Position numbers and translations under genes: made by a program. The notes below the pieces were generated by a model that had not been told where the DNA came from, did not search any database, and saw only the letters and a program-made list of their open reading frames with translations. This document shows positions 33,359-63,100 of a DNA stretch of 64,000 nt, in pieces (positions within the stretch are counted from its first letter, which is position 1; each line of letters opens with the position of its first letter). The DNA lies in NCBI GenBank assembly GCA_964247055.1, contig OZ176055.1, forward strand, positions 7,936,001 to 8,000,000, written 5' to 3'. The DNA comes from Paragordius varius (lineage: Eukaryota > Animalia > Nematomorpha).

Positions 33359-36350
33359 TTAAACCGTTTTATTTTTGACAACATTGTTGGGTTCCACCAT
33401 GTTTTTATGGTCAGACGACGACGTTGCAGTTAAATTTTCAATTCCAACTAAGTTTGAATTTTCAAAATCTTCAATACATTTCATGCTGAAGTCCCAGAGT
33501 TCTTGAGCAAGGTTAGGGTCTCGACTAGCTGGAGAACTTTTTTCCAAAGTACAATCCCCGTAATAATAACCGCCCATATCTTCAAGTTCAGGTGCAAGGG
33601 CACAATACAATATGGTTTGACAACCCTGTAATAATATAAGTTCAAATTTGTTTCCTTTATATATATATATATCATTTACAGTTCAAATTCACCCTTAAAC
33701 ATTCAAATTCACACCCTAAAATAAATTATGTGTTTTTTATATTATTTAAAAAATGAAATTACGTTTAAAATTATAATAATACTGAAAAAATAATAAACTA
33801 TGCCATAAAGATTTATTTTATATTAATGATGAGTTATATTAGCCCGAAAATGCATAATTTATTTTTAAAGTGAATTTGAATTGTTGGAGGGTGAATTTGA
33901 ATATTTTCAAGGGTTAATTTGATTTGTAAATGGTATATATATATATAATAAAATTATTATAGAGACAAAACATACAAAAATAAAAAGGCAAATAATTATT
34001 TAGAGACAAATATTTTTAAGTAAAACCTTTAATTTTTTCAATACATATTATATAAATACACCCAAACTCAAAATTACTTAAATAGTTTACGTGGGAAAAC
34101 TAAGGTTTGAAATAACCCAGAAATCGGTTTTAAAATTGGATATTTAGTCCCGAAACTATCTCTAAAAAACATAAAATTAACGCTTATAGTTAGTGGTTCA
34201 AAAATTAAGCACAAATTAGTTCTAATTTCGATAGTTACGATATATAATTTTCTAAAATTTGAAAAAAAAACAGATAAGGACGGTTTATCCATTTTCATTT
34301 TTACAAAAAGTTTTAACATCCACATACAAAGTCAATCCTTTTTTTAATGCCGATTTATGAGTTGACTCATTTTTTAACCTCTTTTAAAAAAATAATTTTA
34401 TAATCTTTTTATGCGCAACTGATTTCTTTTATTAAGTTTAATCAAACTGTTAAAAAGGTATTCTATAAATAAGGAAGTTAGTTCAAAACAAAATTGTGTT
34501 AAATTTTTAACGCCTAAAATATAATAAATTTAAAAAAATCCGCGTGTTTTACACATAAAAAGTTTTCTTTATAATTTTAGAAAAATATTCACCGACCTGA
34601 AAAGTGTTTTGAAACACCAAAGTACCAATTTTAACATAAAGTTCACGAAGTTTAGCCAATTTGACTTGAATGTTTTTGCTTAGGTTGGTAACCACGATCC
34701 CAGGATGCATTACAATCGAAGTTATATTATATGGGGGATGCTCTTGTATTGAATCAACATTTTCTTTAATTAAATCATCGTTAGCCCTTATGGATTGGGT
34801 AGTTTTTAGATACCTCTCTAAGCCTTTACCTGTCGACGCAAAAAAATATTTACAGTAAAAATTAATATTATACGAATAAAATGTTAAATATTTACAGATG
34901 CCATATATATATTGATCCTAATTAAACCTATATAGTGATTATACTATAAAAAATATATCAGTAAAGTATTTCGCCCAAAACAATAGGATATTATCTTGAA
35001 AACAATGTTTTTTCTAAAAAATAAGTCATTTACTTTTTATTATTTTTCTAAATAATTTTATTTTTCCTGTTTTTGTAAAACAGTTAATTATTAATATTTA
35101 ACACAAAAACTATTTCTCCGACAATTAAATGATAAACAAAACACATACAAAACATAATAAATATTTTTTAGCACCTAAAATCTCAATGAATGTAAAAGGT
35201 TTAAGAATAAAGCGAAGAGTACAAAGATAATTAATATGTTTAAAGAGGAATTTAAAATGTTTAATGGTAAATTTGAAATGGTCAAGGGTAAACCGATGCT
35301 TAAAGGTGAAAGTAAATATTTAAGAGTAAAACATAAATGTTAAGTAATGCATTTTAAAGTAAAAATAAACAATGTTGAAGGGTAAATTTGAAATGTTTAA
35401 AGGTTGATATATAAATGGAACAAAAAAGTAAAAATACCCGTTTTTAATCGTCTGGCTAATTCTTTGGTAAACAAAATGTTTGCAAGCTTACTGGTTGCAT
35501 AAGCTTTCATATATCGAAATTCACGACGTTCAAAATGTAAGTCGGAAAAATCAATTTCCCCGCCCTTGTGAACAAAAGAGGAAACCGTTACGATTCGCGG
35601 TTTTAAATTAGTTTCTTGAAAATTTGGTAGAGCATAAAAACGTGATTTTAATTTTTCTTCCGGTGACTCGGCAAACATTGGACAACGGCTTGGATTTTGA
35701 TTGGTGTCGTCATCATTTGATTCAGCTAAATCATTTGCTGACTTTTTATCGATTTTGCTTTTATTTTTTGTATAAGCAATCATATTCTTTTGAGCAGTTG
35801 CATTTAGGAGTGGAAGTAGCAATAGTGTCAGGTACATGTGACCCAAATGATTAATGCCAAAATGTTCTTCATGCCCTTGAGCCGTTTTTAGGCGACGTGT
35901 AGACATAACACCGCCATTATTGATAAGGATATCAAGGCGAGACTCAGTTTCCAGCATTTTTTGAGCGAAAGAACGGATACTCCTGAAATCAGAAAGATCA
36001 CATTTGTGTGCAATCAAACATGGGTATGTAAACTCATCGGAATATCGAGTTTTATCAGAAAACCATTCATCCATTATCTCATGAGTAATGGAGGTAGCTG
36101 CAGATAAACCTGTGCCCTCATCGCGACAAGCCATAATCACACGGGCACCACGTTTCGCTAAATCTAAACTGGTTGCACGACCTAAAAATTAGTAATTAAA
36201 AAATAATTGCTAACCAATTCCAACATTTGCACCAGTAATTATAACCGTTTTTCCTAAAAGTATCTTCCTTGCATCCGGGGCTGCGTCTAAAAATTTGGAA
36301 TATATATTTCTTCGCATTTTCCACTGTCTCCAAATTATAAAGGCAATCTA
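33359..36350 (-). CDS. Short-chain dehydrogenase/reductase, RDH12/13/14-like; 5' end uncertain
   Basis: GKTVIITGANVGIG, DLAKRGARVIMACRD, RLDILINNGGVM, FGINHLGH, YATSKLANILFTKELARRL (YxxxK), HPGIVVTNL and GCQTILYCALAPELE. Confidence 0.85.
33670..33935. mobile_element. TACCATTT-TIR MITE copy in an SDR intron
   Basis: Family TIR and internal sequence. Confidence 0.8.
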
Positions 36351-37179: not shown

Positions 37180-38690
37180 ATAGCTATTATATTTTTAGTA
37201 TTTTAAATTTAGATTAACCTCTTAACTTTTACTTTTACAGTATCTAAAATGATATTTTACAAACAACGAATATAAATAAATTATCTGATTGTGCTTAGAG
37301 CATTGAAGAATATTTATTTTAATAAAAAACTTTATTTTATTACAAGCGATATTATAAAATAGTATAAATGCTAATAAAATATTTTTTGGTTAAGTTTATC
37401 ATTAATAATTCAATAGATTTCTATGTTTTGTTTACGATTGCATTTTAAGTTGTTTTTTTGGATTTTTATATGCTAGTGTTTTCAATGTTTAAGTTAAAAA
37501 TTAATTAAAAAATCTCCTGTAAATAGTGTCATCACAAATCCGCTGGATAAAATATATGTATTCTGATGAAGCAAATCAATATCACAAATCTGCTTTTGAG
37601 CCTTGCGAAAGATTTGACGCTAATTCCACTTTTTTAGTAACTACTCCAATAGCAAAACTTGCCGACATTTACTATAAATTTTTTGGTGGGGCTAAATGCT
37701 TTTCAAAAATTATTACTTAAATGCAGAAATTACGTATAAAGCAATATAATATTTTAATAATTTCAAATTTTAGTGTAGGTCGTGAAGTTTCAAATTGGGT
37801 TAGTTTTCTGAAATATAAGGCAAAAGGGTTGAGATTGAGCGATAAAATTTTACACCAAATTTTTACATAAAATATTTTTTTCTGAAAAGAGACATATTAA
37901 GAATTAAAGGATTAAATTTACTATATAATTCGATAAGGCTGAACATTTCTATCACCTACTTTTAATTGTTAAGTTTGTTTACCTTTAATTTTGGGTGATT
38001 ATATATAAAATAGATTTTAGCATGTATGATTTGCTTTTGACTAAGTCACGTTCCTATAATAATCGATAAGACCGGGGTTATAATTTTTACCATGGTGTCC
38101 ATAATTAATATTAATGATTATGAAAAATAATGTTTTTTAAAGCCGTGGAAAAAATAAAATTTAATTATTTTTTAGATCACAAAAGCGAATATTTGTAATC
38201 AAGTTTAAAAATGATGTCTTATATTAAAATTCGTTTAATATCTATAATCCATAATCAAAAGATAAATCCAGTTTTAAGTTTTGATAATACATCTCTTCTT
38301 AAAATTCCACATAGTTTTTTTTTACCTTGAATTTGGTGGTAAAAATAACCAATTAGGGAAAAAAATTTTTAATATTTTTAATAACTGGTCGAAACGCTTG
38401 ATATTAAAAATATAATATTTCTAAATGTACAATTTATTATGAACATTGAAATTGTTGATTATGTTACAAGCTCATTTAATTTTAAATCATTACTGATACT
38501 AAAGAATGTGAACTTCTTTAAATGCATACATACCTGAAAAAGAGTTTCGACAATAACTAAAATTAAAAAGATATAAATTTGGATCCTTATTCCAATAACT
38601 GCATTTTTTTGATAATTGCATTTATGGAAAGTTTTTAAATATTTTTGGGATTCCCAATAAATTTAATTTTCTGAATGTCCATTCCGTGGT

Positions 38691-41211
38691 TTATTGAGGT
38701 GCCTATGGAAGTATTAATATATCCAGATAACGTTTAAAAATAAAAAATATAAATTAATTCGAAATTACAGTTGAGCCATAATTGGAGGAAGCTGCGTCTG
38801 TCCCATAAGCACTACTGGCGTCATATGCCTAAAGTTAATAATATTTATTAATTATTTATTAAAAAATTGAAATATAAGTAATATCATTTTGAGCTGTTTT
38901 CAAATCAAAAATGTTTTCAAAAACAGTTCCAAAACCGTTTTTACAGCTAAATTTACATTTATAAACGGATTTTTAAATTATTTTTTCATTCTGAAAAATA
39001 TGAATCACATTTTTATATTCTTATTCACATTGTTAAATTGACCAACAAAATATAAACAATTAAGTGGTTCATACGGTAAAAAATAATAAAGATAAAATGT
39101 AAAAAGTGAAAAACAAACTTTTATAATGAAGAAAATTATACTTAATAATACTAAATTATATATCGTTTTGAGGTGAACACTATCAATTATATATTTTGAA
39201 ATCGCAATCATTTAAGTCATAAAGCAAAAAAGGATCAATTGTTCTTGATATGTAAAACAAATATTTGTCTTTATAATTTTATTTTTTATTGTAAATGAAA
39301 CCGTGGGCATTTTGCCCAAAACCATTTAACTTAAATAAAGTCAACCAGTCTAAAATCGGATTTGTGTACTTATTTCTGGAAAAATCTTGCAAATAGTCGT
39401 TAACTTAAATGAAAAAATTTATTAAATGATATTTTAAATTAAACAATAGAAATATTAAAATACTGAAGAAGCTCCGTAATTGGAAGACGCAGCATCTGTT
39501 CCATAAGCACTGCTTGCATCATACGCCTAAACCAATAAAATTTTATTTAATTATTATGAATATATTGTTAAATTATATTAATTTTTTAACTTCAGATTAA
39601 ACACTTCCAGGCCTTAAATAATGTTCCACTCTAAATTTTTACTTTTATAAATGTGCTTGATGCGGATTAATACTTTTAACAGAAAAGAAACTCATATAAA
39701 ACTCAATCGCCTCAATTTTGCGTTATTAATATAGAGGCGTTAAGAGAACTAATTTCCAATGGAATTAGAAATTGTTAAAAGCATTAAAATAGCTGATATT
39801 TATATTGGCTCGGATTAGTTTAATCAAAACATAAACTGGATATCAATTTTTTGTTTATAGATAGGATTATATTGCATGTCAGAATCTAATCAATTTTTGT
39901 TTTTTAGAAAAGCATTTTTACGTTATTACAGTAAAAATTTATAAACCATTGATTATCAGAAAGATAATATATATTTATCATCCGTTTTAAAAATTTGTTT
40001 ATCAAAGCATAAAAATATTTGATTTTTTTGTTTAATATTTTCAAATCAACGTTAGATTTCATAATTTTGATATTTATCTCTGACATTCCCAAACAAAACT
40101 CGGTTTCAGTCAAACAAACTCGTAATAACAACTAACTAAATCATATTTTAAAAATCTAAATCCTTTTTGTATTAGTATTGGAAGATAGAAAATACCGAAG
40201 AAGCGCCATAGTTGGAAGAAGCCGCATCTGTTCCATAAGCACTGCTTGCATCATAAGCCTGTTTTTTATAAAAAAAAATGGGGTTTTATAAATACATCTA
40301 CTCAAAAAACAATTTTATTGAAATTATTTTACAAATTTCAAATCTATATATTTATAAAAATGAAAAAAGCTGGCTTTGTGATCTGTTTCCGGAAAACCGG
40401 TAGACCCATTCAAATCCAAATGTCGAAAAATATAATTATTAATAAATGTCCCGATAATAGCTTCGCCTTTTTTTGAATTAGGCCCCCAGTTCGGGCCCAC
40501 TCCGTGTAAAAAACGATTTTTTTAAAAACAGAAGTCTACAAAAATCATGTCTTTGAGACAATTTTCCGGGAAACGAGACCATTCGATTTCAAATATGATT
40601 TTTACTATTTTTCGCCAAAATTATGAGATCATAATAAATAATTAGGAGTGCAGATCGTATATAAAGACAAAAAATTTGCTTTCCCTCTCCCTCCAAGAAA
40701 ACCGTAGTATGAATATATATATTGCATGAACAATAATTTAGGTAATTTAATTCGAAAAATCAAGTTTTTTAACTGTGAAAATTTAAAAATAATCATAAAA
40801 AGTTAATAGAAAATTGCCGCCATATGCCGGAAGCAGCATCTGTCCCATAACTGCTGGCATCATATTTCTATTTTAAATTTTTTTATCTGTATAATTATTT
40901 TGAAACCAAAATATAACGCATAAACAATTTATTCAAAAAATAATTTTCCTTGAATATAAAGGTAATGTTCTTATTATGCGCATGGCCAAAAATTAATTTT
41001 TTCAAATTTTAATGTACAATTTTAAAGTATTCTAGTAAAATATTTACCGAAGCCCCACCATAAGCCGAAGACGCGTCCGTGCCATAACTTGAAGCCTTAA
41101 TGATATAAAAAATGTTTTTTAAAATTTTAATTGCAAAATAATTATATATTTATATTTGAAATACCGCCGAGGCATCATATGTTGATTCTCCCCCATAGGC
41201 CTAATATTGTT

Positions 41212-41260
<49 letters not shown>

Positions 41261-43106
41261 AAAAAATTACAGTAAAAATTGAAATACAACGGACAAAAGG
41301 TAAAAATAGAAAGGCAAATATTTTTTCAAAAGACAACCATGCTTTTTTAAACCTTAATTTTTCATTAAGCTCCTTAATTAAAGTTATTAAAATATATGAT
41401 TGATTATGTTACCAATATACATATTTTGCAATTTAAAACGATGAGTTTTATTTAAATTAAATTTAGAAAAGAATGATTGTCTTTTAAGAAAAAATAGTTG
41501 TCTTTATATTATACGTTTTGTCCCTATAATTTCAAATTTTACAGTATTTTTTTAATTTGAAATTTTAATTTAGTTATTCATACCGAGGATGCGCCCGCAC
41601 CATATGCACTGGAATAGGCCTAAAATTTGTATATAGAAAATGTTTGTAAAAAGATTAATTGGTTGATAAATATAAAAATACCCCAGAAGCATCGTAAGTT
41701 GATTCTCCACCATAGTTCTAAAATATAGATTAAATAGCATGAAGGAAAACTTTTAAAGGCAGCAAAAAATTGCATAAATAGTTCCAGAAAAAGGATATAA
41801 CTTAACAAAATTGCGTTTTTGAGTTCCATTTAAACTATTCTTCTTAAATATAATATTAATGCGTACTGTTAAACAATTATTTTTATTCGCTAACAAATTT
41901 TCCCTTTAAAATGACCAAATTGAAAGTTATATACCATTTACAATTTAAATTCACCCTCGAACAATTATTTACCCTTGAAAAATTCGAATTCACCCTAAAA
42001 ATAAATTATGGGTTTCGGAATATTATAACTGAAATTTAATGAGATATATTTTTAAGACATAGTTTATTCTTTTTTCAGAATTATATTAATTTTAAAGAGA
42101 ATTTCAGATTTTAAAAATATTATAAAATAAAGGTGATTTTTAATCTCTAAAAACACATAATTTATTTTAGGGTGGATTTTAATTGTTCAAGGGTGAAATT
42201 GAACTATAAATGGTATAGTATGAGTTGAGAAGTTTCCAATATTTATCAAATAACATAATGAATCCATAAATAAACATATTTTAAGAATTTATCGTTTAAT
42301 ATTTTAACATCTTTTGGCAAATATAAAATAAACCTATCCCTATACAAACAACACATACTATAAATCTATTATTCATATCATATGATTTTTACGAAATCTT
42401 TTTCTTAATATTGCTTTCTTTTATAAAAATATTAAAAATTTACCGATGTTGCTCCGTAAGCGGATGAGGCATCAGCCCCATAAGCACTGGAAGCCTATGA
42501 TAAAAAAATAAATTAAATGTCAGAGATTTATCATAAATTCTTAAAATTTTTGGATATTTAAAAAAATCTCAAAATTTATTTTAATATAATACAGCTGAGG
42601 CATCGTAAGCGGATTCTCCTCCATAAGCCTAAAAATTTAAATAAAATATTTAAATTTTAAAATTCATATATTAACAAATATATTTATTCAAGTAAATTTT
42701 TAAAATTTTACCGAGGACGCACCGTATGCAGACGAGGCGTCTGCACCATAAGCACCGGAATAAGCCTAGAAAAATATAATGTAAAACAATTCAAATTCAC
42801 CCTTGAACAATTCATATTCCCCCTTAAACAATTCAATTCCCCTAAAAATAAATTATGTGTTTTCGGGCTAATATAACTCATATCAATATGAAATAAATTC
42901 TTATGAAATAGTTTATTATTTTTTTAGTATTATTTCCATTTTTAAAAATATAAAAAAATATAGGTAATTTTTAAGCCTAAAAACCCATAATTTATTTTAG
43001 GGTTAATTTTAATTGTTTAAGGGTGAATTTGAACGGTAAATGGTATATAATAAAAAAAATTAAAATTCAATAATTTGGTTAAAAAAATATTTAAATGAAA
43101 AAAATA

Positions 43107-43146
<40 letters not shown>

Positions 43147-44773
43147 TCCAGAAGCGTCATAACTTGATTCAGCACCATAAGCCTATTAAAAAATAAAACA
43201 TATTGATTTTATTTCTATGCAATAGAAAATTATTGATAAGTGTAGTATGAAATATTAGATATTTTTTAGAAAATTAAAAAAATAATGCTACTAAAACCAA
43301 TATGGTATAAAATATTACCGAAGATCCATAATTTGAAGCATCGGCACCATAGGAGGAATATGCTGCCTAGAGTTTTAAAGGCACAAATATTACATAAATC
43401 AATTTGTAAAATAAAATTGAAATATAATAAAACTTTACCGAACTGTCGTAAGTTGATGTCTCCCCGAGTGCATAAAGCTATTAACAAATATCATAAAATT
43501 ATATTTGATCGATATTACTAAATATTTTACAAAATTAAAATTGATACATTTTTTAATGACTTCTAAAATAAACCGGGAAAAAAACTTTGTAGCGAAAACT
43601 ATTTATACCTCAGCAGCCAAAGGGGGTACAGTTTGACCCCTTGGTTGACCGCCGTCGTTTCCGTCTGGCAAGGGGGTCTCGGCAACACCTAGGCTCGGAA
43701 TGCCAGCAGCTGATGTAATGTCCGTAACTTGTGGGACCGATGTCAGCTGATTGTCCGCTATAGCTGTGATCATCTGTGAACTATCAGCTAATTGTTGAGC
43801 TGGGGCAGGGGGAGGAGTTGGAGGGACAACCGTTATAGCTGGTGGCGTTTCCTCCCGAATGGGTGGGAGGGATGATCCTGAACCAACTGGTCGTTTGGTT
43901 AAACTAATGCGGCCAGCACTGGCACGTTTGACAGGTGGAGATGGTAGGGGCGTTGCCACGGGTAACGGACTCACAGTTGGCGATTGAGGCGTTGCCATGG
44001 CAACCTTTGGCGCTGCAGAAACCGGAGCAGAAGGAGGCGATATTGTAGTAGAAGGCACAGATGTCGGTGTAATAGGGCTGACTTTGGGAGCTGGGAGTAA
44101 ACCTGAATGATAGATAGATTTTTTATGTAAATTATACTCAAAACTAACTTATTTTTAAAGCAAATAAAATTTTATTGAGATACTATACATTATTTGCGTT
44201 TTTTCAAAACTAGTTAAATTTGAAAAATGATTATAGTAAGAAACCTTTTTTGCTCTTTAACGTAAAAAAACTCTATTTTAAGGATGCAAATGTGTGATAA
44301 AATACTTTTTAAGGTTACCTTTTTTGCCAGAAATCTTATTTTTGTAAATGATAAAAGCTGCAACACCCAATTCAGCTATGATAAGGATAATGCTTATAAT
44401 TCTAGTTTTAAGCCATACAGGATTAGCGCTTCTTGCTATCATCTTTTCCAGGGCCCCAGGCACTAAAAAAGAGAATGAAATATATATGATTGGAAATTTA
44501 TAATAATTCTACTATAGGATTTAAATTCAAAATAATTATAAATATTTGTTATAATAAAAATCAAAATATCCTGACAAAAAGTAATAACTACCATATCTTT
44601 TTAAATCTTTTTAATGTAACTTATTCATTGTTTTGTTTTGGTAAATAAAGAATATAGAGAAAATTGGTAACGTACTCAATTATCTATTTAATTGCTAAGA
44701 TAAAAAAATTGGTTGTCTTTTTAAAAACTGGGTTTTTAAGTTTTTACGTTTTTTGTGTCCATAATTTTGTCTT

Positions 44774-44809
<36 letters not shown>

Positions 44810-46967
44810 AATTACATGGTAACTTTATTATGTTTTGCTGAAATTTATAGATGTCGCCATCTGGATCCAGGCAGGAAAATGTTATTTCCTCCTTTCCCCG
44901 GCTTAGTTCTTTGACTAAAAGCAGCTCGTTTCCAACCACTCGAAAATTTTCAGAGTTTGCTTGACACTTTAGCTGTTCCGGATAATGGAATTGCACTTTT
45001 TCGATAACACTATTAACCGTGGCATTAATGTATACAGCTATGATGCAAAAATATATTTAAGTAAAAATTTGGATATATGGTTAAAATAATTTATTTTAAA
45101 AAGAACAAGCTCTTTGCAGTAATTATTAAAAGAAAAAGATAATTACTTAATATTTGCTAACAAAAACAACTATACGTAAATTAGGAGCCAAAAGAGGTTT
45201 TGGTTTCAGTGGTGGTGGAATAACTATTAGGGATAAAATTTGTTCAGCTATCGCCGTACCATACAAAACTTGAATGTATAGCGTATAAACTTTGGGTGAA
45301 ACCGGGTTAATTATCTTGACTTGGCCCAAGTCATCAATAGCAAAATAATTTAGTTCATTCCCTTTCGTAATCTTATAGCTGTATTCCAATTTTTCAGGGG
45401 TCGTCGGGTCATCTTGCTTAAGTTTTGGCTTAACTTTATGCACTACGCCGGAAACATCGTTAAATACCTCAACGTACCAAAATGGTTCCAACAGTATCAA
45501 TAACGGTTTAAGGATTTCCACCTCAACCCGCAACGACGTATAAACACTGGAAGAAGCAAATCTTGCAGCGATAAAAGTTAAAAGCGTTTCTGGACAAGTG
45601 TCATCCAATGGTGCTGTAAATAAAAATGTGCAACTGATTAAAAAATGCGGAATTAGGTTAAGGTACTATATGGTGTGCTTCAAATTACATCTTATGATTA
45701 ATTATATAACCGATAACGTTTACACGGAACCATTTAAAAGCGGTTCCAGAAAAAAAGGATTTTATTTTAATTTTTAATACATGGTTATAATGTTAATTTA
45801 ACAAAAAGATTTTAGCCTGAAAAATTAAATAAATATTTTTGCCAAATAATATCGCTCTCCTTTGCTATCGGTGGGACCTCAGGGGATATCAATATGAAAT
45901 ACTAAAGTTTTACTGCATATCCAACACACTTTTGCAGATTAGGTAAATGGCTGAATACCAAATATTTTAGATATTTGCGGAATTTCATTCCATCTCTTAA
46001 ACACAAACGAATATACAATCACAATGTATATCATTATAACTTGAGAACATATACTTTTTAGAGTTAAAGTTCCGCTACTTTGATTAACTTGCAACCATTC
46101 ATTGTTCAAGGTGTATTCGATCGGTATTTCGGCATTTTCATTTTCCGCCTGAAGTTTAGCAACTACCGTATTAACAGTGGCATTCATAGGGAGTTTAGTT
46201 ATGAGGGGACCCCTAAAAACCGGGGAAACCTTGATCTGTTGCATTTTTAGGGTTATATCCATCTCAACCGGTTTTCCAAAATACGAGGCACGGGCCCTAT
46301 AACTCAACTCTTTGAATAGGAGGGGTAGCTTAGCATCTGGCAGCTGACAAATTTGGACTCTACCATCATCATCTCGTTTGATGGAGAAGGCATCGGATGG
46401 CAAAATTTCATACCTTATCATTTTGACATCACATTTACCACAAATGGCACGTGGCTGAGAGTATAACATTATATGCTTAGAATAGCCAGGTTATATAATT
46501 TTGCTGGTATAAAATTAAATTGTACGGACAAAATGTAAAAACTAAAAGACAAATATTTTTTAGGAATCAACTAAATTGTTATACAGACTAACGCAAAATT
46601 AAAAAACATTTTTTTTTGTAAAAGTTAACCCATATTTTTAAATCTTGTTTTTTATAAATATAACTCAATGCTTTAGTTGGCGAAATAAAAATTTGAGATG
46701 TAAATTGGAAATTTTTAATTAAAAAGTGTCATTATAAGGTTTATGTGGGAAAAATTAAGGTTTAACATTATGCTTGTATTTTTAAGATTTATAAATTGTT
46801 GACATATGCTATAAAATTTCAGAACATACTATTTCATAGCAAGGTTCATCCATCAAATTAATTGTTACGGAGTTTGTGATAAACCTGATGGGAATGACTT
46901 TGTTAACATCAATTTTGGCACCATGTAACAAAAGGCCGAATCCACACAATAAAAGGATAGGAATCAT
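38691..46967 (-). CDS. Type I membrane protein: signal peptide, divergent cadherin-like ectodomain, TM helix, Pro-rich segment and micro-exon-encoded Ala/Tyr/Gly/Ser tail
   Basis: ATG at 46967 gives MIPILLLCGFGLLLHG. Cadherin-like strings IEYTLNNEWLQVNQSSGTLTL and YKITKGNELNYFAIDDLGQVKI. TM IISIILIIAELGVAAFIIY (~44410-44340). Pro-rich exon 44103-43609, then 13 phase-0 micro-exons and a last exon APQ* (38702-38691). Confidence 0.75.
40343..40600 (+). mobile_element. Truncated 5' fragment of the Helitron-like element
   Basis: Closely similar to ~2152-2410 (GCTGGCTTTGTGATCTGTTTCCGGAAAACCGG; TAGGCCCCCAGTTCGGGCCCAC). Confidence 0.8.
41932..42215. mobile_element. TACCATTT-TIR MITE copy inside the micro-exon array
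   Basis: Family TIRs at both ends; another copy at ~42781-43045. Confidence 0.8.
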
Positions 46968-47469
46968 ATTTAAATAGCAACGGACTTTAAAAAAATATGA
47001 TGTTATAAAAAATTGCCTAAAGGAAATAAAACTTTAACTTAAATTAAATAAAATTAAATGAGAATCATTAATTATAAGATTCCTATCAATTGAAATATAA
47101 ATAATGATTGTTGAAATGCAATATAATTAATAGGGTGCCGTGCCTAAAATGCAACCGGTAAAATTTATCAGAAAATATACCATTTGCGCTTCAAGAGTGT
47201 TCTTGAATTGAAAATTTCAAGTTAATCCTTAACTTTTGTTTTATTTTTAACTTTTATCAATCAAAATGTTTATAATTCATCTATTTCAGTGGTACTCATC
47301 AAAAATATTTGACGGGCCAAATAAAATATATTTTTATTTTCGAGGGCCATGAACCTTATAATGGCAAATATTTCATAATTATTTGAAACCTACAATGAAT
47401 TTTTGCGGATCGCTTGTAAATCCAGCTAAAACTGGTTTTGCACCATTTAGTTGAAAAAATTAAAATATT

Positions 47470-49250
47470 TTGATAACAACATTTATTTTAAAATAACTAA
47501 TAATTTTTAACAAATTTGGTTTCGCCTCATGACAGGCCAATTTTAATACGTCATCCATATGATCATCGGTTAAGCGATTTCTGTATGTATTCTTGGCATA
47601 CTTTATTTTTGAATATGCCGTCACACGTTTAAATTGAGGGAAAGACAGTTAAGATACCTTGCGCACATTTTTTATAATTTTATATTTGGCACATCTTGAC
47701 AAAACTCTACATATTTTTCTTCTCTGCGATTCTCCTTGAATATAGCCTCCAAATCATAATCATTTTTAAAATCTACGAATTCTTCAATGATATGCGCCTG
47801 ATCAAAATCGAATGCTCAAGTTGCTTAATATTCGATATATCCAGATGCCAAGGATTTTCAACGAGTTTTAAGCAATTTTTAATATTTCTTAATTCTTGAA
47901 ATCTGAATAATCCCATTAAATATAAATGTTAAATAATTGTCTATTGTTAAATTAATCTCGGGATAAATTTTATGTTTTTTCATGAATCGTTTTAATTGTT
48001 GGAAAATATAGGAGTGTTTTATTTATAAAATCTTGTTTATATATAATTAATTTTTCTTCAAAAGCAAATATTTGATTAGCAAACTGGATTATTATGCTCC
48101 CTTGAAGAATTGTATTAAAAATACTATGTTTATAAGGTCGCAAAGGTAGGCTAATAAAGGCCACCGTTGCCACTATTAATTTCATTGTCAAACTTTCTGT
48201 TATCTTTTATAAAAAATAGAATTTCACGTCTTAAAATAAAAAATCTATTTAAGACTTTGCTAAGGCTTAGCCATCTCACCGCGGTGTACAAATGAATATC
48301 ATCGAACTACCTGTAGATATCTTTCGGTAGTTCGAATTTACGGCGGTTAAATTCTCTGCCACGGATGTGGTTAACTATATCCACAACCGTTTAAATTACT
48401 GAATTGAGTGATCTTTTACACGCGAAACCAAGTTTTGATGATGAACAAAACAATAGAAGGATATATTTTGCAAATTATATTTGTTTTTCAAAAGAGAATT
48501 ATATCCTTTGTTTATTACGATCGGACCATCTATGCAGATCGAAACCAATTTTTTCATATATATACCATTATTATCAAAAAGGGTGTTAATTATTTCGAGA
48601 ATCACTTTCTTTCACATTATTCATTGGCAAAAATCTTAAAATTTCCTCGTTGATTTTATTATCGTTGCAAAATCTCACGAAGAGCGCACATTGAGATGTT
48701 GAACTAAGATCAGTGGAATCAATACCAATACTAGAATATTTGCAGTTTTTCATAGCCAATATTGTATTGTTAAAAACATATTTAGACATATCTTCAATGC
48801 GTCGAGCACACGTTGAATCAGAAAGTTAAAGTATTTTAATTTGCCACATGATATGATCTTTATTATGGAATTTATCAAATAAAAAAGTGCCACCATATAT
48901 TATACATTCTTTTAATAGTTAAGAATCAGTAAACTTTTTTTCTAAAATAGAGCAAATACGAAGGTAATGTTACAATTTTTCTCTGGGAAAAAGCTAAGGG
49001 AATAATAGATTTTTCTTTCTGGCATAATTCCTTTTTATATTTTTTGTTTCATTCCTCTTGATTTTATAGAGAGAAAGATGGATTGTCAAATAACTCTCAA
49101 TATTGTATTTTTTATAATATGTTGTCCTTACATATAAGGCAGGTAACAATATTTTTATATAAAACGACAACAAATTTTTTTCCCTTTCTTTTTAAAGAAG
49201 CGAATTTTATCGGATAATTCGTTTTTTAACATTAGATGTCCTTCTTTTAA
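47470..49250 (-). pseudogene. Decayed hAT (Buster/Charlie/GTF2IRD2-like) transposase
   Basis: Frameshifted fragments STCARRIEDMSK, IGIDSTDLSSTSQCALFVRF, SICIDG..CFVHHQNL, AVRWLS and C-terminal YRNRLTDDHMDDVLKL; multiple stops. Element boundaries not resolved. Confidence 0.8.
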
Positions 49251-50500: not shown

Positions 50501-53500
50501 TATTTGTTTTATATGTCAAAAAAATATATCACAATTGCACACCACTTTTAGACTGATTCATATAAATAAGTTAATTTGCCTCTGATAATATTTTGTTAGA
50601 TGTATCGATAGTAAGCAAATTTCTGACTACAATTATGCGAATAAATTAAAAAATGATCTTATTAAATGTCCTATTTGTGGTATTATCAAACCTAACATAA
50701 AAAGCCATTTAAAAAGTTGTTCAAAACGTTTTGATATTCCGTTAAATGATTTAGCTCGCATATATAACAATTATCAAATTGAGAAAATATCTATAAATTC
50801 AGATATAGAAACTCTTAGGACCAGGTTTAGATTTTAACTAAGTTTAGTTATAAACCTATTAAGAAGCAAAATAAAATCTCCACATCAAAATATGATTTTC
50901 AACTACAACTCGGTTTAGCACTTTCCAAATCCGAACAAATCTCTAAAAATACCAAAATCCATCGCAGTTTAATCGAAATTAAAATAGCCCGTAAAGACAA
51001 TTTGGAAAACAGATTAAATCTCTGTTTAGAAAACTCGTTACGCGCCAATCAATGGTGTCATAAGAAATTTTATGGTAGCGATCATATTAATAATATTTCG
51101 AATACATATTTTTACATATAAAAAGAGTTAGTTTACAACATAGTTTGTTGAAAAACATGGCAAGAAAATCATTAACATTCAATTTTAGTCTACCAGATTT
51201 GGATGATCCTATCTCACCTGCAAAAGTTGGCCCAAAAATTTATGCTAACAATGTAAACGAAATTATTGACTTGAATTCTAGCAAAAATACCACAATTTCT
51301 TTGGAAGAACCAAATGAAATGGGAGATGATAATTTGGTTTTTACGTTAAGTTTAAACAATAATCCTATATCATCATCAACCCCTAAACATATAAAACTTA
51401 TTAAAGCGAATCCACTTCAAAAATCAGAAACAACCACTATATTATGTCCAATTACACCACAAACTCCCAGGAGTATGAGAGTTCTTAGTAATAAATCTAT
51501 CGATATAAATGAAATTAATGAAACATCTATTGTAGAGTGTATATCTCCTTATATATCAAACACAAAGCCTCTTAACAATTCGAATGCGTCTGCAAATTCG
51601 TTAGAAAAGGAACAATCATTTAAAGTTTTATCGCCAACTGACGAATATTATGAACAGGATTATGCGGCTTATCAAGAAAGTTATCAATGTTATTACCCAA
51701 TTAATGTGTCAAATGAAATAAATTTTCCAAAGTCTCCAAATGAAATAAGTTTTAAAAATGATTCTCCTAATCAAATGCATAAAGTATTACCTGCAGAGAA
51801 TAAAGTGGTTGATAATATGGATGACATTGAAAATGGGACAGGCTCACATTGTATGGATATCGTAGAGATATCACGAAAGGAATATGAATGCGAAGTAGAA
51901 AATTTAGAATCAATTGATTATATATTGGAAAAAGCGTCTGATGCTTTGCAAAACAGCGATGAAAAGATTAATTCTACCTTAAATGAAATTTTAACCACTT
52001 CTGAAACAATAAATTTGGAATGTTATGAAAATTTTAGCGCATCTGTGTTGAAATTAAATCTTGACACGCCAATTAGTGAAAAAACTAAAGATAAACTTAT
52101 TAAAGTAAAAAGTAAGGAGCCCAAAAAAATTAGTCAATTGAAAAATAAAAAGAATGGTAAAATCCAAATAAACATAAATCCTCTGCCCATTCAAGCACCA
52201 ATACTCAAGAATAAAACCAAATATCACGTTAAATGTCAAACTTTATCGCACGCAGATTTGATAAAAGAAGCCCACAAATACGGCGTTAAAAAGTTAAATC
52301 AAACCCGATTGCGAGCTATATTAACCAATATTTACAATTATTTCGATGAAATAGAAACGGGTAAACAGTTTAAAACTAATAATACATCTCAAGAAACCTC
52401 ATTTACAGATTTAAATGCAAATCATGATAAGAATAAAAGGAAACGTTTATCCCAAGCTAAAAAACTAAGTAAAAAATCAAAATTACCAAATGCAAATATT
52501 ATTAATATAACTGATCCTATCTCCTGTATAACACCTCCCCGGCCTGCCTCAAAAAATACTTTTACTATTCAGAGTCCTCCAGATTCTGGCTTTATATCTG
52601 ATGCTTTTTTAACCAATAATTGCAAAAATCCCGACAATAATGTTGTGATATCAAATGAACTAATTGACAATCCAGACATAAGTGAAGATGATCTCACCGT
52701 TAATGCAATATCGCCTATTGAGCCCAAATCATTATATGAGGTAAGTTTCGAATATTTCTCATTGCTTAAATAATATTTTTGATGTGTTTGGTGTTTTTTT
52801 TATTTTGTTTGCGTTGATGGTTTTAGTTTTACTATTCATAAATATAATATGCAAAAAAACTTTACCGTTGATAATAAAATTTGTGTTTTTGAGTGCTGGC
52901 TTGCTTATCAAATATTTGTTATATTTGAATTTTTTGTACGGTCAATATAAAAATGCTCTAATTAATTTCGATCACCATTCAATTGTAACCGTAATTTTGC
53001 TTTGAAAAAATATTTTATCCTATATATAGTTTTACATATATTTGTGTACAGAGATTAGGGATTCAACACAGTCCCGTGACTCAAACTATAGAAGAGGTTA
53101 TCACATATGGCTCACAAACCAATTCTAATCAATCATTTTTTCACGATATGCAAAATGATATTGACAATAATTCTAATTCTTTAACCAGTAATCATCACCT
53201 TTTAACACCTACGAAAACTTTAAAAAATACCGGCAGCAAAAAACTTTTAGTTAAAAAACTTAGCGTAACCAATTCCATGCTTTACGAATATATTAAAGGG
53301 TCACCATTTTATACACGTATACTTAGGTATGAACCCATACCCTTTGATGAAATATATACGCATTTAAATGAAACCTATTTACCATCCCTTAAGATAAGTT
53401 CAACAAGAATGGAAAATAGCTTTTTATTACTCCAATCACCGGATAAATTTTATGTGTCTACTTCTCAAGAAAATAAAAAGAAAAAATTAATAGTAACTGA

Positions 53501-53633
53501 CATTGAATATCAGTATAAAAAATGTTGTAAGAATCAATTAATAAAATTTTTGGACTCTTACTGTATAATTTTTAAGTTTGATCAACCCAAAGGTTGGAAT
53601 CATAAACCTAAAACAGCACGACAAAAAAGATGA
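50481..53633 (+). CDS. SLX4: Structure-specific endonuclease scaffold SLX4-like
   Basis: Two UBZ4-like fingers (CFICQKNISQL...HINKCID; CPICG...SHLKSC), MLR-like DFQLQLGLALSKS, SAP-like LIKEAHKYGVKKL..LTNIYNY, and SLX1-binding C-terminus FYTRILRYEPIPFDE...LIKFLDSYCIIF. The junction near 51100-51150 is unresolved. Confidence 0.8.
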
Positions 53634-60100: not shown

Positions 60101-63100
60101 TTATGGTTGAGCCATTTTTGTCATAATCCATCTTGAGCGATTTTCTTTGAGGGCTGAAACGATACCTAAAAAATATATTTTTTAAATAATATTTCAGGAT
60201 GTTAAAGGCCTTTAAAATTAATTACTGTTGAATAAAGGGTCCAGCAAGGCTAGAGATTCGTAAAGAGGCATACAGACTTCAGTTAACCATGTTTCTTGAC
60301 CTTGAGGAATTTCTTTCTTTTTATCCCTATCCATCATAGGATTTAATTGATCAGTAAAAATTTGCTTTTCCAGATCGCCTTGGGTGTAAAATTCGGCGGT
60401 AACCAAATCAACAGCCTTTACACATATAACATAATATATTTTAGATAAAAATATATGACGAATAGGCTGGGAAAAATATCCGGATCTTAATTCTTTAAGC
60501 TAATGTTTAAAAATTTTATTTCGTTTTAAGCATACATATATAACTAAAATGCATTTATTTTATAAAGAAAAAATTAATAGATAACTGGGCTTTTAAAGAG
60601 GTTTGTGCATACCACCATTATTATGTTTAATGTAACATGAATGTCGTTTTTATAAATAGGTTCGTTGATTGGGAAATTAATTTTTTAAATTAAAATAAAA
60701 TTCATTAATAACGGACATTATAAATACAACTTTTATCATTTGTAAAACATGTAAAACTAAATCAGCTCTTTCACGTTTTAACTTATTCTTTCTTCGCTCA
60801 TATGCCGTTTCATCCCATTTGAAATTGGTGAAAATTCATTATACCTCTCTATCATGCCAAATGAATTCTTCTTACTTATAATATTTTAGATTTTTATGCA
60901 AATTTTATGAATAACCTTTTTCTGAATATCCCAAGCTTTGAATGAAGCCGATAAATCACATGCAGACATTAGCATCCCCATAAGTAATTTCAAATGATCC
61001 CCATTTTTGGGGTTAAATTTAACATTGCCTGTTTCCAGTGTCTCAGCATTCCGTTTTTCTTGTTTAACGCTTTCCTTAAGGGTAGATGGCGAAGGTGAGG
61101 ATAATTGAGATACGGTTGTTGCTTTTACCATATCAAAAAATTGTTGTCGAGTTTTGAAATGCACCGAGAGATCCGTTGCTAAGATAGCGACTTTGAGCAA
61201 AGAAATGACCCTTCTGTAATCCTCTGGTTTGAGATTGGCAAATATATTATGGCCTTCAGTATGCAAAATCATGATTGCCATATTAAAATGATGATATTCC
61301 ATGGTAGCTTCGCCACCATATAATTGCTCAAGCGGTGAATGTGTTCTACGGTTATCGACAAAATATATATTTATTCCAAAATAACTCTCGCTTAACATTT
61401 AAAAATATCGAGAAAAAGTTAAAAAACTACTTTATATGGTAGGCATTATTGAGTCCTCTGTGATCGAGATCATGGGAAAAACATGCAACAATTATAGCTA
61501 ACCAATCCAACGGTTCAAAGTATTGAGTTAAAATTTTGGAATTCTCGAGGTTGCATAAATGATTATAAAATATTTATTGAAAGATGAGAGTTATAGTAAA
61601 AATAAAATTAAACTAACTTTCATAATGGCATACATGGTTTGAGCAACGTTAAAAGCATGACACCAATTGTGATATAAAACTTTGCGATAATTTCTCCGGG
61701 TCGTTAAGATCCACCTACAAAGGGTCTATTGTGGCAAAAAATAAGATTAATATAATATACAATTCCAAGAGGTATTTAAAGGCCATTTCGGTATATTAAA
61801 TGAACAAGAGGATGTTTTGTTTGCTGCCGAGTATGCGATTTTTTTTAGTTACATATAATTAAACAATCACTGTATGTTTTCTCTAGACAATTTTGAAAAT
61901 GTAAGTAATAATTTACGAAAAATCTTATACATGGCAACATGCATGTAAAATCTTCTTTTAGCCATTTAAAATACCGAAATAGTCTATAAATAAACTCTCG
62001 TTACCATATACAGTATGCATTTTAATGGGTGCTAATTACTATAGTAGGGTAATTTGCATCACAGTGTGTATGGAAAAAACAACAAAATGAATAAACAATT
62101 ATTTCCTTTTTTCCATACACTCTTGTGTTGCAAATTGCCCCCTATTATAGTGTAAATTAAGCAACCATTAAAATTCTTACTACATATAAACCAAATTTTT
62201 AATTAACAATACCTCATAATTAATATTAAATTCTTCAATGAAATTGGCATCAATAAACATTCGCACAACGGCTTTAATCATATCGAAATCGTTTAAGCTG
62301 TAATCATCAAACATCAGATCCTCGATATTCAATTTTTTGGCTGAATCAATTTTAGCATACTGTTGCATATAGTATTAAAATCAAAAATATTGTTTTTCAT
62401 AAAGTGTTTTGTTTTCGAGAAAAAAATTGAATATTATATATGATGTTCATTAAAAATAATCTCTGCAAAAAAATATTTAATTTTTAAAAATGTAGGGGAA
62501 GGCTCGTAACAAACGTAAGTTTTAACCGAGTAATTGGCTATAATTCTTTAAGTTAACGTTTCTATCAGTTCTTTAAAAACGAAACCGGTTTAAGTCGCAA
62601 AAAAGGGAGCTTTCTCTGGTTCGCATTTTTGCATACCAAAGAGAATTCTAAAAAATTAAAACCAAGTCCCAACCCCTAAACCGCGGTTTAATATTTTTAT
62701 CAAAACCGTTGAGTTTATTGATTTAAACTCCGAGCTTTCGGTAAAAAGTTACACCATATATATGGGATTATAAATTTACGGTTAATCTTTGGACATCATC
62801 TTCTGGTGTGCGGACGTGATACGATAGAACCTGTAATACACATGAGAAAAGTTTTTGTTAAATAAAAATTCAGACTAAATTACGTATTTATATATATAAA
62901 AAGACGTTACTTCTAAAGCAACTGATTTCATTGCGTTGGTATCTGCCATTTGCAAATAAAGGATACTTTTATCATATACCAAACCACAAAATATACCAAA
63001 TATCTAAAGTTTTTACAAATAAACATAATAGAATATATTCTGACAATATTTAATTTTTCAGTGAAAAGTATTACTTTAAGTAATTGTTCATCATATTTGT

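Follow-up and report, generated by a model that had tools for sequence, protein, structure and literature searches.

A candidate cadherin-like receptor gene of Paragordius varius with a predicted tyrosine-rich tail encoded by thirteen frame-neutral micro-exons

Small symmetric exons are a known way of encoding repetitive or disordered proteins, and symmetric exons have been reported to be linked to protein disorder in general (PMC3632108). Here, we describe a locus of the nematomorph Paragordius varius in which this design appears to be used for a tyrosine-rich, predicted cytoplasmic tail on a cadherin-like receptor. The window, meaning the whole 64,000-nt stretch that was analyzed, is C6:7936001-8000000 (contig OZ176055.1, assembly GCA_964247055.1), and the gene was modeled on its minus strand from position 46967 to position 38691. 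The literature was searched for a cytoplasmic tail encoded by tyrosine-rich micro-exons and for a cadherin with a low-complexity tail, and no relevant description was found. On balance, the sequence points to one real, single-copy, lineage-restricted gene whose product is probably a type I membrane protein. The gene is unusual and its model is well supported, and the functions considered below are putative.

The closest described exon arrays differ from this one in several respects. In the micro-exon genes (MEGs) of schistosomes, symmetric exons of at most 36 nt make up the bulk of the coding sequence; they are flanked by an ordinary exon at either end of the gene, and the encoded proteins are small and secreted. 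Both the MEGs and the bicycle genes of aphids resemble the present locus in having runs of tiny symmetric exons that are invisible to open reading frame (ORF) finders. Here, however, the small exons are 36-63 nt long, contribute 606 of ~2454 coding nt (a quarter) and follow a transmembrane helix, which places the gene outside the definition of a MEG. The 54-bp exons of fibrillar collagens and the exons of titin PEVK and tropoelastin likewise arose by tandem duplication and are frame-neutral, with one or two repeat units per exon. They differ from the exons described here, which are 36-63 nt long, in peptide chemistry and in the predicted cytoplasmic location of our repeats.

Among receptors, protocadherin-15 and the mucin-like protocadherin share with our model a signal peptide and tandem beta-sandwich repeats of the extracellular cadherin (EC) type, followed by a single transmembrane helix and an extended, proline-rich, probably disordered cytoplasmic region. 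In contrast to protocadherin-type receptors, the present protein has no Pfam Cadherin match, its calcium-binding residues are replaced at the two readable linkers and it has only about four repeats. It also differs from classical cadherins, since Pfam recognized no catenin-binding or other known cytoplasmic domain in exons 5 and 6 and the tail is of low complexity.

Two groups of proteins have tails or domains comparable to the tyrosine-rich part. FUS-type domains carry regularly placed tyrosines among glycine, serine and glutamine, with few charges, and form condensates or fibers. The tail resembles the domains of FUS, EWS and TAF15 in composition: one tyrosine per ~6.5 residues amid serine, glycine and alanine, and neither lysine nor arginine. 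Its segments AYSSYG and AYSGAYG also recall SYSGYS and SYSSYG of FUS, whose phase separation is described as tyrosine-driven (PMC5927716). Unlike the FUS-type domains, the tail has no glutamine, has alanine in place of much of the glycine, contains 10% Asp/Glu and would sit on a membrane receptor rather than on an RNA-binding protein. The second group is formed by nephrin and LAT, membrane proteins to which the modeled protein bears a loose resemblance: they have disordered cytoplasmic tails with many tyrosines, as would be the case here, where 8 of the 31 are followed by aspartate (Y-D). Those tails carry 3-9 defined motifs (YDxV, YxN), whereas ours would carry 31 tyrosines in near-identical repeats without a hydrophobic residue at +3. 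If the tail is expressed as modeled, the gene would be a natural fusion of a membrane adhesion receptor with a FUS-like, tyrosine-rich, acidic low-complexity domain. It could then serve as a convenient natural system for studying how the number of stickers on a membrane-anchored tail governs clustering or signaling.

The micro-exon array and its age

Thirteen micro-exons of 36-63 nt were found on the minus strand, all in phase 0-0 and all with AG acceptors and GTA donors. Together, they amount to 606 nt and 202 residues (53 Ala, 53 Ser, 31 Tyr, 28 Gly, 15 Asp, 10 Thr, 5 Glu, 5 Asn, 2 Leu and no Lys, Arg, Pro or Cys). The exon peptides were pooled solely for such residue and codon counts, while searches and folds were run exon by exon. 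An initial annotation of the window had listed 13 phase-0 exons of 36-63 nt with 606 nt, 202 residues, 31 tyrosines and no Lys, Arg, Pro or Cys, and these counts were reproduced exactly.

The array opens with micro-exon 1 at 43477-43439 (39 nt, LYALGETSTYDSS), separated by a 131-nt intron from the last of the upstream exons, and micro-exon 2 at 43366-43319 (48 nt, AAYSSYGADASNYGSS). The next eight belong to two unit types. Type A has the unit x-Y-G-G-E-S-x-Y-D-A-S-x and four copies of 36 nt each: micro-exon 3 (43182-43147, AYGAESSYDASG), micro-exon 5 (42628-42593, AYGGESAYDASA), micro-exon 7 (41717-41682, NYGGESTYDASG) and micro-exon 9 (41200-41165, AYGGESTYDASA). Type B, with the unit A-Y-S-x-A-Y-G-A-D-A-S-S-A-Y-G-A-S-S and shorter forms of it, is represented by micro-exon 4 (42765-42712, 54 nt, AYSGAYGADASSAYGASS), micro-exon 6 (42494-42444, 51 nt, ASSAYGADASSAYGATS), micro-exon 8 (41619-41584, 36 nt, AYSSAYGAGASS) and micro-exon 10 (41095-41048, 48 nt, ASSYGTDASSAYGGAS). 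Three copies make up type C (A-Y-D-A-S-S-A-Y-G-T-D-A-A-S-S-N-Y-G-A-S-S). Two of these, micro-exon 11 at 40258-40196 (AYDASSAYGTDAASSNYGASS) and micro-exon 12 at 39526-39464, are 63 nt long and identical in peptide, and the third is micro-exon 13 at 38828-38769 (60 nt, AYDASSAYGTDAASSNYGST). Tyrosine is the second residue in 10 of the 13 micro-exons, in nine of them after alanine. Therefore, each intron keeps a constant position with respect to the repeat, which is what tandem duplication of exons would produce.

The array stands out from its surroundings. In 2-kb bins, the GC content of the very AT-rich window is 24-34%. The micro-exons have a GC content of 0.44-0.61 compared to 0.21 in 4.2 kb of introns, and each of them is a GC island. 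A scan for composition and splice sites over both strands of the 64-kb window found AG...GT open stretches of such composition at the array alone. The genome (110.6 Mb, 44 contigs) was also searched with degenerate back-translated patterns for Y-G-x-E-S-x-Y-D-A and Y-D-A-S-S-A-Y-G; these gave four and three matches, respectively, all at this locus, and reversed-pattern controls for both peptides gave none. ORF-based annotation of this AT-rich genome misses the array and, thus, a quarter of the gene's coding sequence.

Selection on the copies was assessed by the Nei-Gojobori method. Within types, the proportion of synonymous differences (pS) was 0.45-0.89, which is near saturation, compared to a proportion of non-synonymous differences (pN) of 0-0.15. 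The two identical type C peptides illustrate this pattern, since micro-exons 11 and 12 (40258 and 39526) differ at seven codons, all seven synonymously. The pattern disappeared in both other frames, one of which contains stops. Because the peptide has been kept despite near-saturated synonymous sites, and in the proposed frame alone, the micro-exons can be taken as genuine coding exons on which purifying selection acts. Their reading as real exons in the initial annotation is, therefore, borne out at the level of the peptide. The single related DNA run that was compared differs too little from the window for constraint to be visible.

The duplications themselves are old. In 80-nt intron flanks, identity between micro-exon copies was no higher than the background given by random pairs of introns, and the introns cannot be aligned. 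The 13 micro-exons arose by ancient tandem duplication, fall into two or three types of unit and, as a rule, begin with Ala-Tyr.

A decayed 14th copy of type C, absent from the initial annotation, was found on the minus strand at 40867-40825. Its acceptor is intact, its GT donor has been lost and its frame is broken, so it runs into a stop if it is spliced in. It is an example of how an unconstrained copy looks here, and it was the sole hidden or decayed copy found at the array. It could act as a poison exon or as an alternative terminal exon, judging from its intact acceptor and the stop. With old constrained copies and one decayed comparator, the locus offers a clean case of repeat growth by tandem exon duplication.

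Dispersed repeats lie between the micro-exons. Two ~270-bp copies resembling miniature inverted-repeat transposable elements (MITEs), with terminal inverted repeats, occupy 42775-43045 and 41927-42217 and make up a large part of the two long introns of the array. This MITE-like element had 3049 first-look candidates in the genome, and the 40 copies that were scored showed ~80% identity. A second dispersed family, also ~270 bp, is represented at 40340-40615 in the intron after the decayed exon. It had 3027 first-look candidates, and its scored copies were ~90% identical, so the family is probably young. The related DNA run covered it at very high depth. ARAGORN detected no tRNA-like part in it. 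Finally, (TA)n microsatellites are present in introns of the gene at 41207-41269, 43097-43153 and 44779-44806, and one of them abuts the donor of the micro-exon at 43182-43147.

The receptor exons and their probable link to the array

Six exons upstream of the array, all on the minus strand, form the receptor part of the model. Exon 1 (46967-46830) begins with ATG, encodes a hydrophobic, signal-peptide-like N-terminus, MIPILLLCGFGLLLHGA, in its 46 codons, ends in phase 0 and has the donor GTATGT. Exon 2 (46454-46055, 400 nt) belongs to the ectodomain and contributes two N-x-S/T sites and three cysteines; its C-terminal half resembles the first half of a cadherin-type repeat. Exon 3 (45613-45176, 438 nt) encodes the end of one cadherin-like repeat and one whole repeat with the motif YSYKITKGNELNYFAIDDLGQVKI. 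Exon 4 (45037-44816, 222 nt) supplies a membrane-proximal piece of the ectodomain, and exon 5 (44462-44319, 144 nt) a single predicted transmembrane helix, IISIILIIAELGVAAFIIY, followed by KNKISGKK. Exon 6 (44102-43609, 494 nt) encodes 164 residues rich in proline, serine and threonine, contains no cysteine and ends in phase 0. The six exons are consistent in frame over 1836 nt (612 codons), with six GTA donors and AG at every acceptor. The initial annotation's order of signal peptide, ectodomain, transmembrane helix and proline-rich exon is, thus, coherent.

The topology also fits a type I membrane protein. The strongest hydrophobic stretch lies in exon 5 (Kyte-Doolittle 19-residue maximum of 2.63) and is the sole strong one besides the N-terminal signal. 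All eight cysteines and all three N-x-S/T sites precede this helix, in an ectodomain of ~400 residues, and none occurs in exon 6 or in the tail. The ~370 residues after the helix, first proline-rich and then tyrosine-rich, are probably cytoplasmic and disordered.

Several features suggest that the array belongs to this gene. Exon 6 shares its strand with micro-exon 1, only the 131-nt intron separates the two, and both junctions are in phase 0. The GC content at third codon positions was similar when receptor exons and micro-exons were compared (0.33 versus 0.32-0.39). The possibility had been raised that the micro-exons form a separate gene, and no independent first exon (ATG plus a hydrophobic segment) was found upstream of or among the first twelve. 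One candidate start for such a gene was rejected: the open frame at 39211-39119, the sole one inside the array with an ATG and a hydrophobic segment, is AT-rich and lies past 12 of the 13 micro-exons. The anatomy, therefore, suggests that the micro-exons would be spliced onto the proline-rich exon 6. Beyond micro-exon 13, past a 66-nt intron, a probable terminal coding piece was modeled at 38702-38691 on the minus strand; it would encode APQ and then a stop, which lies inside AATAAA. As modeled, the gene has ~20 coding exons, ~817 codons and ~2454 coding nt. Every one of the 19 donors starts with GTA, and acceptors have the form (T/A)AG behind T-rich runs.

How far the ectodomain resembles cadherins was examined by several methods. 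A full HMMER (phmmer) search with exon 3 against 1.8 billion representatives gave 60 hits, and all six that were checked are multi-repeat cadherin proteins. The matches run through YSYKITKGNELNYFAIDDLGQVKI, in one case over ~100 residues across a repeat boundary; the summed E-values are overstated, since one short motif matches many repeats. The motif x-Y-x-I-x-x-G-N-x-x-x-x-F-x-I-D-x-x-G-x-I is present in exon 3. A profile was then built from 84 cadherin repeats, leaving out the query. With hhalign, exon 3 matched this profile at 97.8% (E 9e-13), a figure that is inflated because the members had been chosen as exon 3 hits, and the second half of exon 2 matched it in register at 34% (E 4e-4). 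Exon 4 gave no match to the profile, to Pfam or to the PDB. Protein-language-model features, which are independent of the profile, placed exon 2 nearest to named ESM-Atlas clusters that are all eukaryotic Cadherin (0.94), and those of exon 4 gave weak immunoglobulin-like leads (0.80). A sequence search of the PDB with exons 2-4 yielded nothing usable, its best hit, the ribosomal protein eS31, being a chance match.

The structural check of the ectodomain that had been suggested gave a divided result. The AlphaFold2 (AF2) model of exon 3 had a mean predicted local distance difference test score (pLDDT) of 68, exceeding 90 at approximately residues 80-130 and staying below 60 across the first 70 residues. 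Foldseek matched it best to protocadherin EC domains (E ~2e-5, TM ~0.5). In contrast, exon 2 modeled alone reached a pLDDT of 38.6. The EC-type beta-sandwich with the Y-x-I-x-x-G-N...F-x-I-D-x-x-G-x-I core was found, as a predicted fold, in the exon 3 domain. These data identify at least one remote cadherin-type repeat in the ectodomain and make a second one, in exon 2, probable.

The repeats had been called degenerate, and their linkers agree with that description. Compared to the profile consensus V-x-D-x-N-x-A-P, linker 2/3 reads VEVEILKP (Asp replaced by Val and Asn by Ile) and linker 3/4 reads SLIVIPPP. The calcium-binding linker residues (DxNDN, DxD and the Glu of the PE motif) are lost at both linkers that were readable. 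The interior of repeat 3 keeps a D-D pair and a glutamate. Elsewhere in the genome, ordinary cadherin loci were recognized with PF00028 at C4:9267546-9269405, C9:2868736-2886128 and C2:8076052-8084976, which could serve as internal controls when cadherins of this genome are annotated.

Possible roles of the tail and use of its exons

The tail has a simple and regular chemistry. Tyrosine occurs about once per 6.5 residues, Ala, Ser, Gly and Tyr make up 82%, acidic residues 10% and basic residues are lacking. Alanine precedes 19 of the 31 tyrosines, and the residue that follows is glycine in 19 and aspartate in eight; the main contexts are A-Y-G (19) and Y-D-A-S (8). The ectodomain would mediate adhesion or recognition, probably independently of calcium, and the acidic Ala/Ser/Tyr/Gly tail of 202 residues, probably disordered, would be placed in the cytoplasm. 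There, it may act as a multivalent array in which ~31 tyrosine "stickers", placed at even intervals, recruit partners or self-associate beneath the membrane. If phosphorylated, the tail could dock SH2-type partners, as the tails of nephrin and LAT do. SH2-domain genes are present in the genome and, therefore, the machinery for reading phosphotyrosine is present. Alternatively, the tail could associate through aromatic contacts like a FUS-type low-complexity domain. Any particular function remains tentative and, taken singly, would be a rather doubtful assignment. The further suggestions of the initial annotation, namely cross-linking of the tail and a role in host interaction or in the capsule, are speculative. 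The exon array itself is most readily explained as a record of repeat growth through exon duplication, like the collagen or titin PEVK exons, rather than a splicing switchboard.

A number of observations weigh against a cadherin-like receptor with this tail. Even with E values of up to 10 allowed, hmmscan against Pfam found no family in exons 1-6, Cadherin included, with noise at most in exons 5-6. A six-frame search of the whole genome with PF00028 at E up to 1 gave 29 matches at other loci and none here. The alignment of the exon 3 fold used repeats picked by their similarity to the query and is, therefore, partly circular, and the N-terminal half of the model has low confidence. In the ortholog search with exon 3, the 1.8 billion representatives returned generic multi-repeat cadherins only, and the exact-product look-up of the exon 2 ORF gave no record; both negatives weigh little because the collections do not include this organism's own ORFs. 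For the tail, a search for RNA runs that cover the locus found none, and three runs presumed to be RNA gave no spliced contigs there. The junction of exon 6 with the micro-exons, the terminal exon and the choice between constitutive and alternative use are features of the model. A short, tail-less isoform would be equally possible, since exon 6 left unspliced runs into a stop one codon later. The net charge of approximately -20, with no basic residues, works against simple self-association. Finally, the initial annotation had argued from E-x-x-Y contexts for Src-type sites. This argument fails for most of the tail, since glutamate is found at -3 of just 4 of the 31 tyrosines and A-Y-G dominates.

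These points change the receptor reading in part. The name cadherin-like stands as a remote likeness, seen with HMMER, hhalign, AF2/Foldseek and the exon 2 clusters, but it does not extend to a Pfam Cadherin match. "Degenerate cadherin-like repeats" describes two of the roughly four domains fairly, and formal membership of the Pfam family was not found. The protein had also been thought apparently undescribed, which agrees with the lack of a described ortholog among the 1.8 billion representatives or in the exact look-up. Exons 2 and 3 are single-copy in the genome, and neither they nor the repeat peptides have paralogs that could be found there.

A possible alternative to constitutive use of the array is a splice-tunable tail, as the initial annotation proposed: tissues or stages would differ in which of the 13 symmetric exons they include, and this choice would set the number of phosphotyrosine or sticker motifs. 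All 13 exons are in phase 0-0, so any subset stays in frame, and the decayed copy indicates that the number of exons has changed over time. However, phase symmetry permits exon skipping without demonstrating it, and duplicating exons in tandem yields such symmetry incidentally. Purifying selection and good splice sites are seen in every copy, which fits constitutive use at least equally well. Symmetric arrays such as the 54-bp collagen exons are, as far as is known, spliced constitutively. Tuning of the tail by splicing is, therefore, considered unlikely.

Another possible explanation is that the tyrosine-rich exons serve chiefly an extracellular structural product, such as a matrix, cuticle or egg-coat protein with cross-linked tyrosines, made as a separate secreted isoform. 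Exon 1, like exon 6, ends in phase 0; exons 2-6 total 1698 nt (566 codons), and their omission would join exon 1 to the array in frame. An Ala/Ser/Gly/Tyr composition without Lys, Arg or Cys also recalls silk-, resilin- and eggshell-type proteins. However, it is phase arithmetic that makes the skip from exon 1 conceivable, the closest upstream donor is that of exon 6, 131 nt away, and the first twelve micro-exons have no first exon of their own upstream of or among them. Resilin- and elastin-type repeats, moreover, are usually rich in proline and glycine, and the tail has no proline. We regard such a product as improbable. A combination of the two ideas, in which splicing of the 13 frame-neutral micro-exons sets the valency of an adhesion receptor's tail and the skip from exon 1 also yields a secreted form, appears more improbable still. 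If it were true, it would provide splice-encoded, graded control over a cortical condensate or over signaling strength.

That the micro-exons are not expressed coding sequence, being either remnants of a gene that has died or GC-rich islands that arose by chance, is hardly credible: one copy has clearly decayed and no RNA run with the locus was found, but the peptide has been kept in the proposed frame only while synonymous sites approach saturation, all 13 copies have intact AG/GTA sites and open frames, and the decayed copy shows the loss of constraint that the 13 do not.

Neighboring features in the window

No Rfam family was detected in the window, and no tRNA was detected in the locus (38000-47500). 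An open frame of 542 residues at 51145-52773 on the plus strand had no Pfam match. Three other neighboring open stretches did match known families: 35397-36140 (minus strand) matches adh_short, a short-chain dehydrogenase, 53076-53633 (plus strand) matches the Slx4 endonuclease and 60886-61398 (minus strand) matches a 3'5'-cyclic nucleotide phosphodiesterase.

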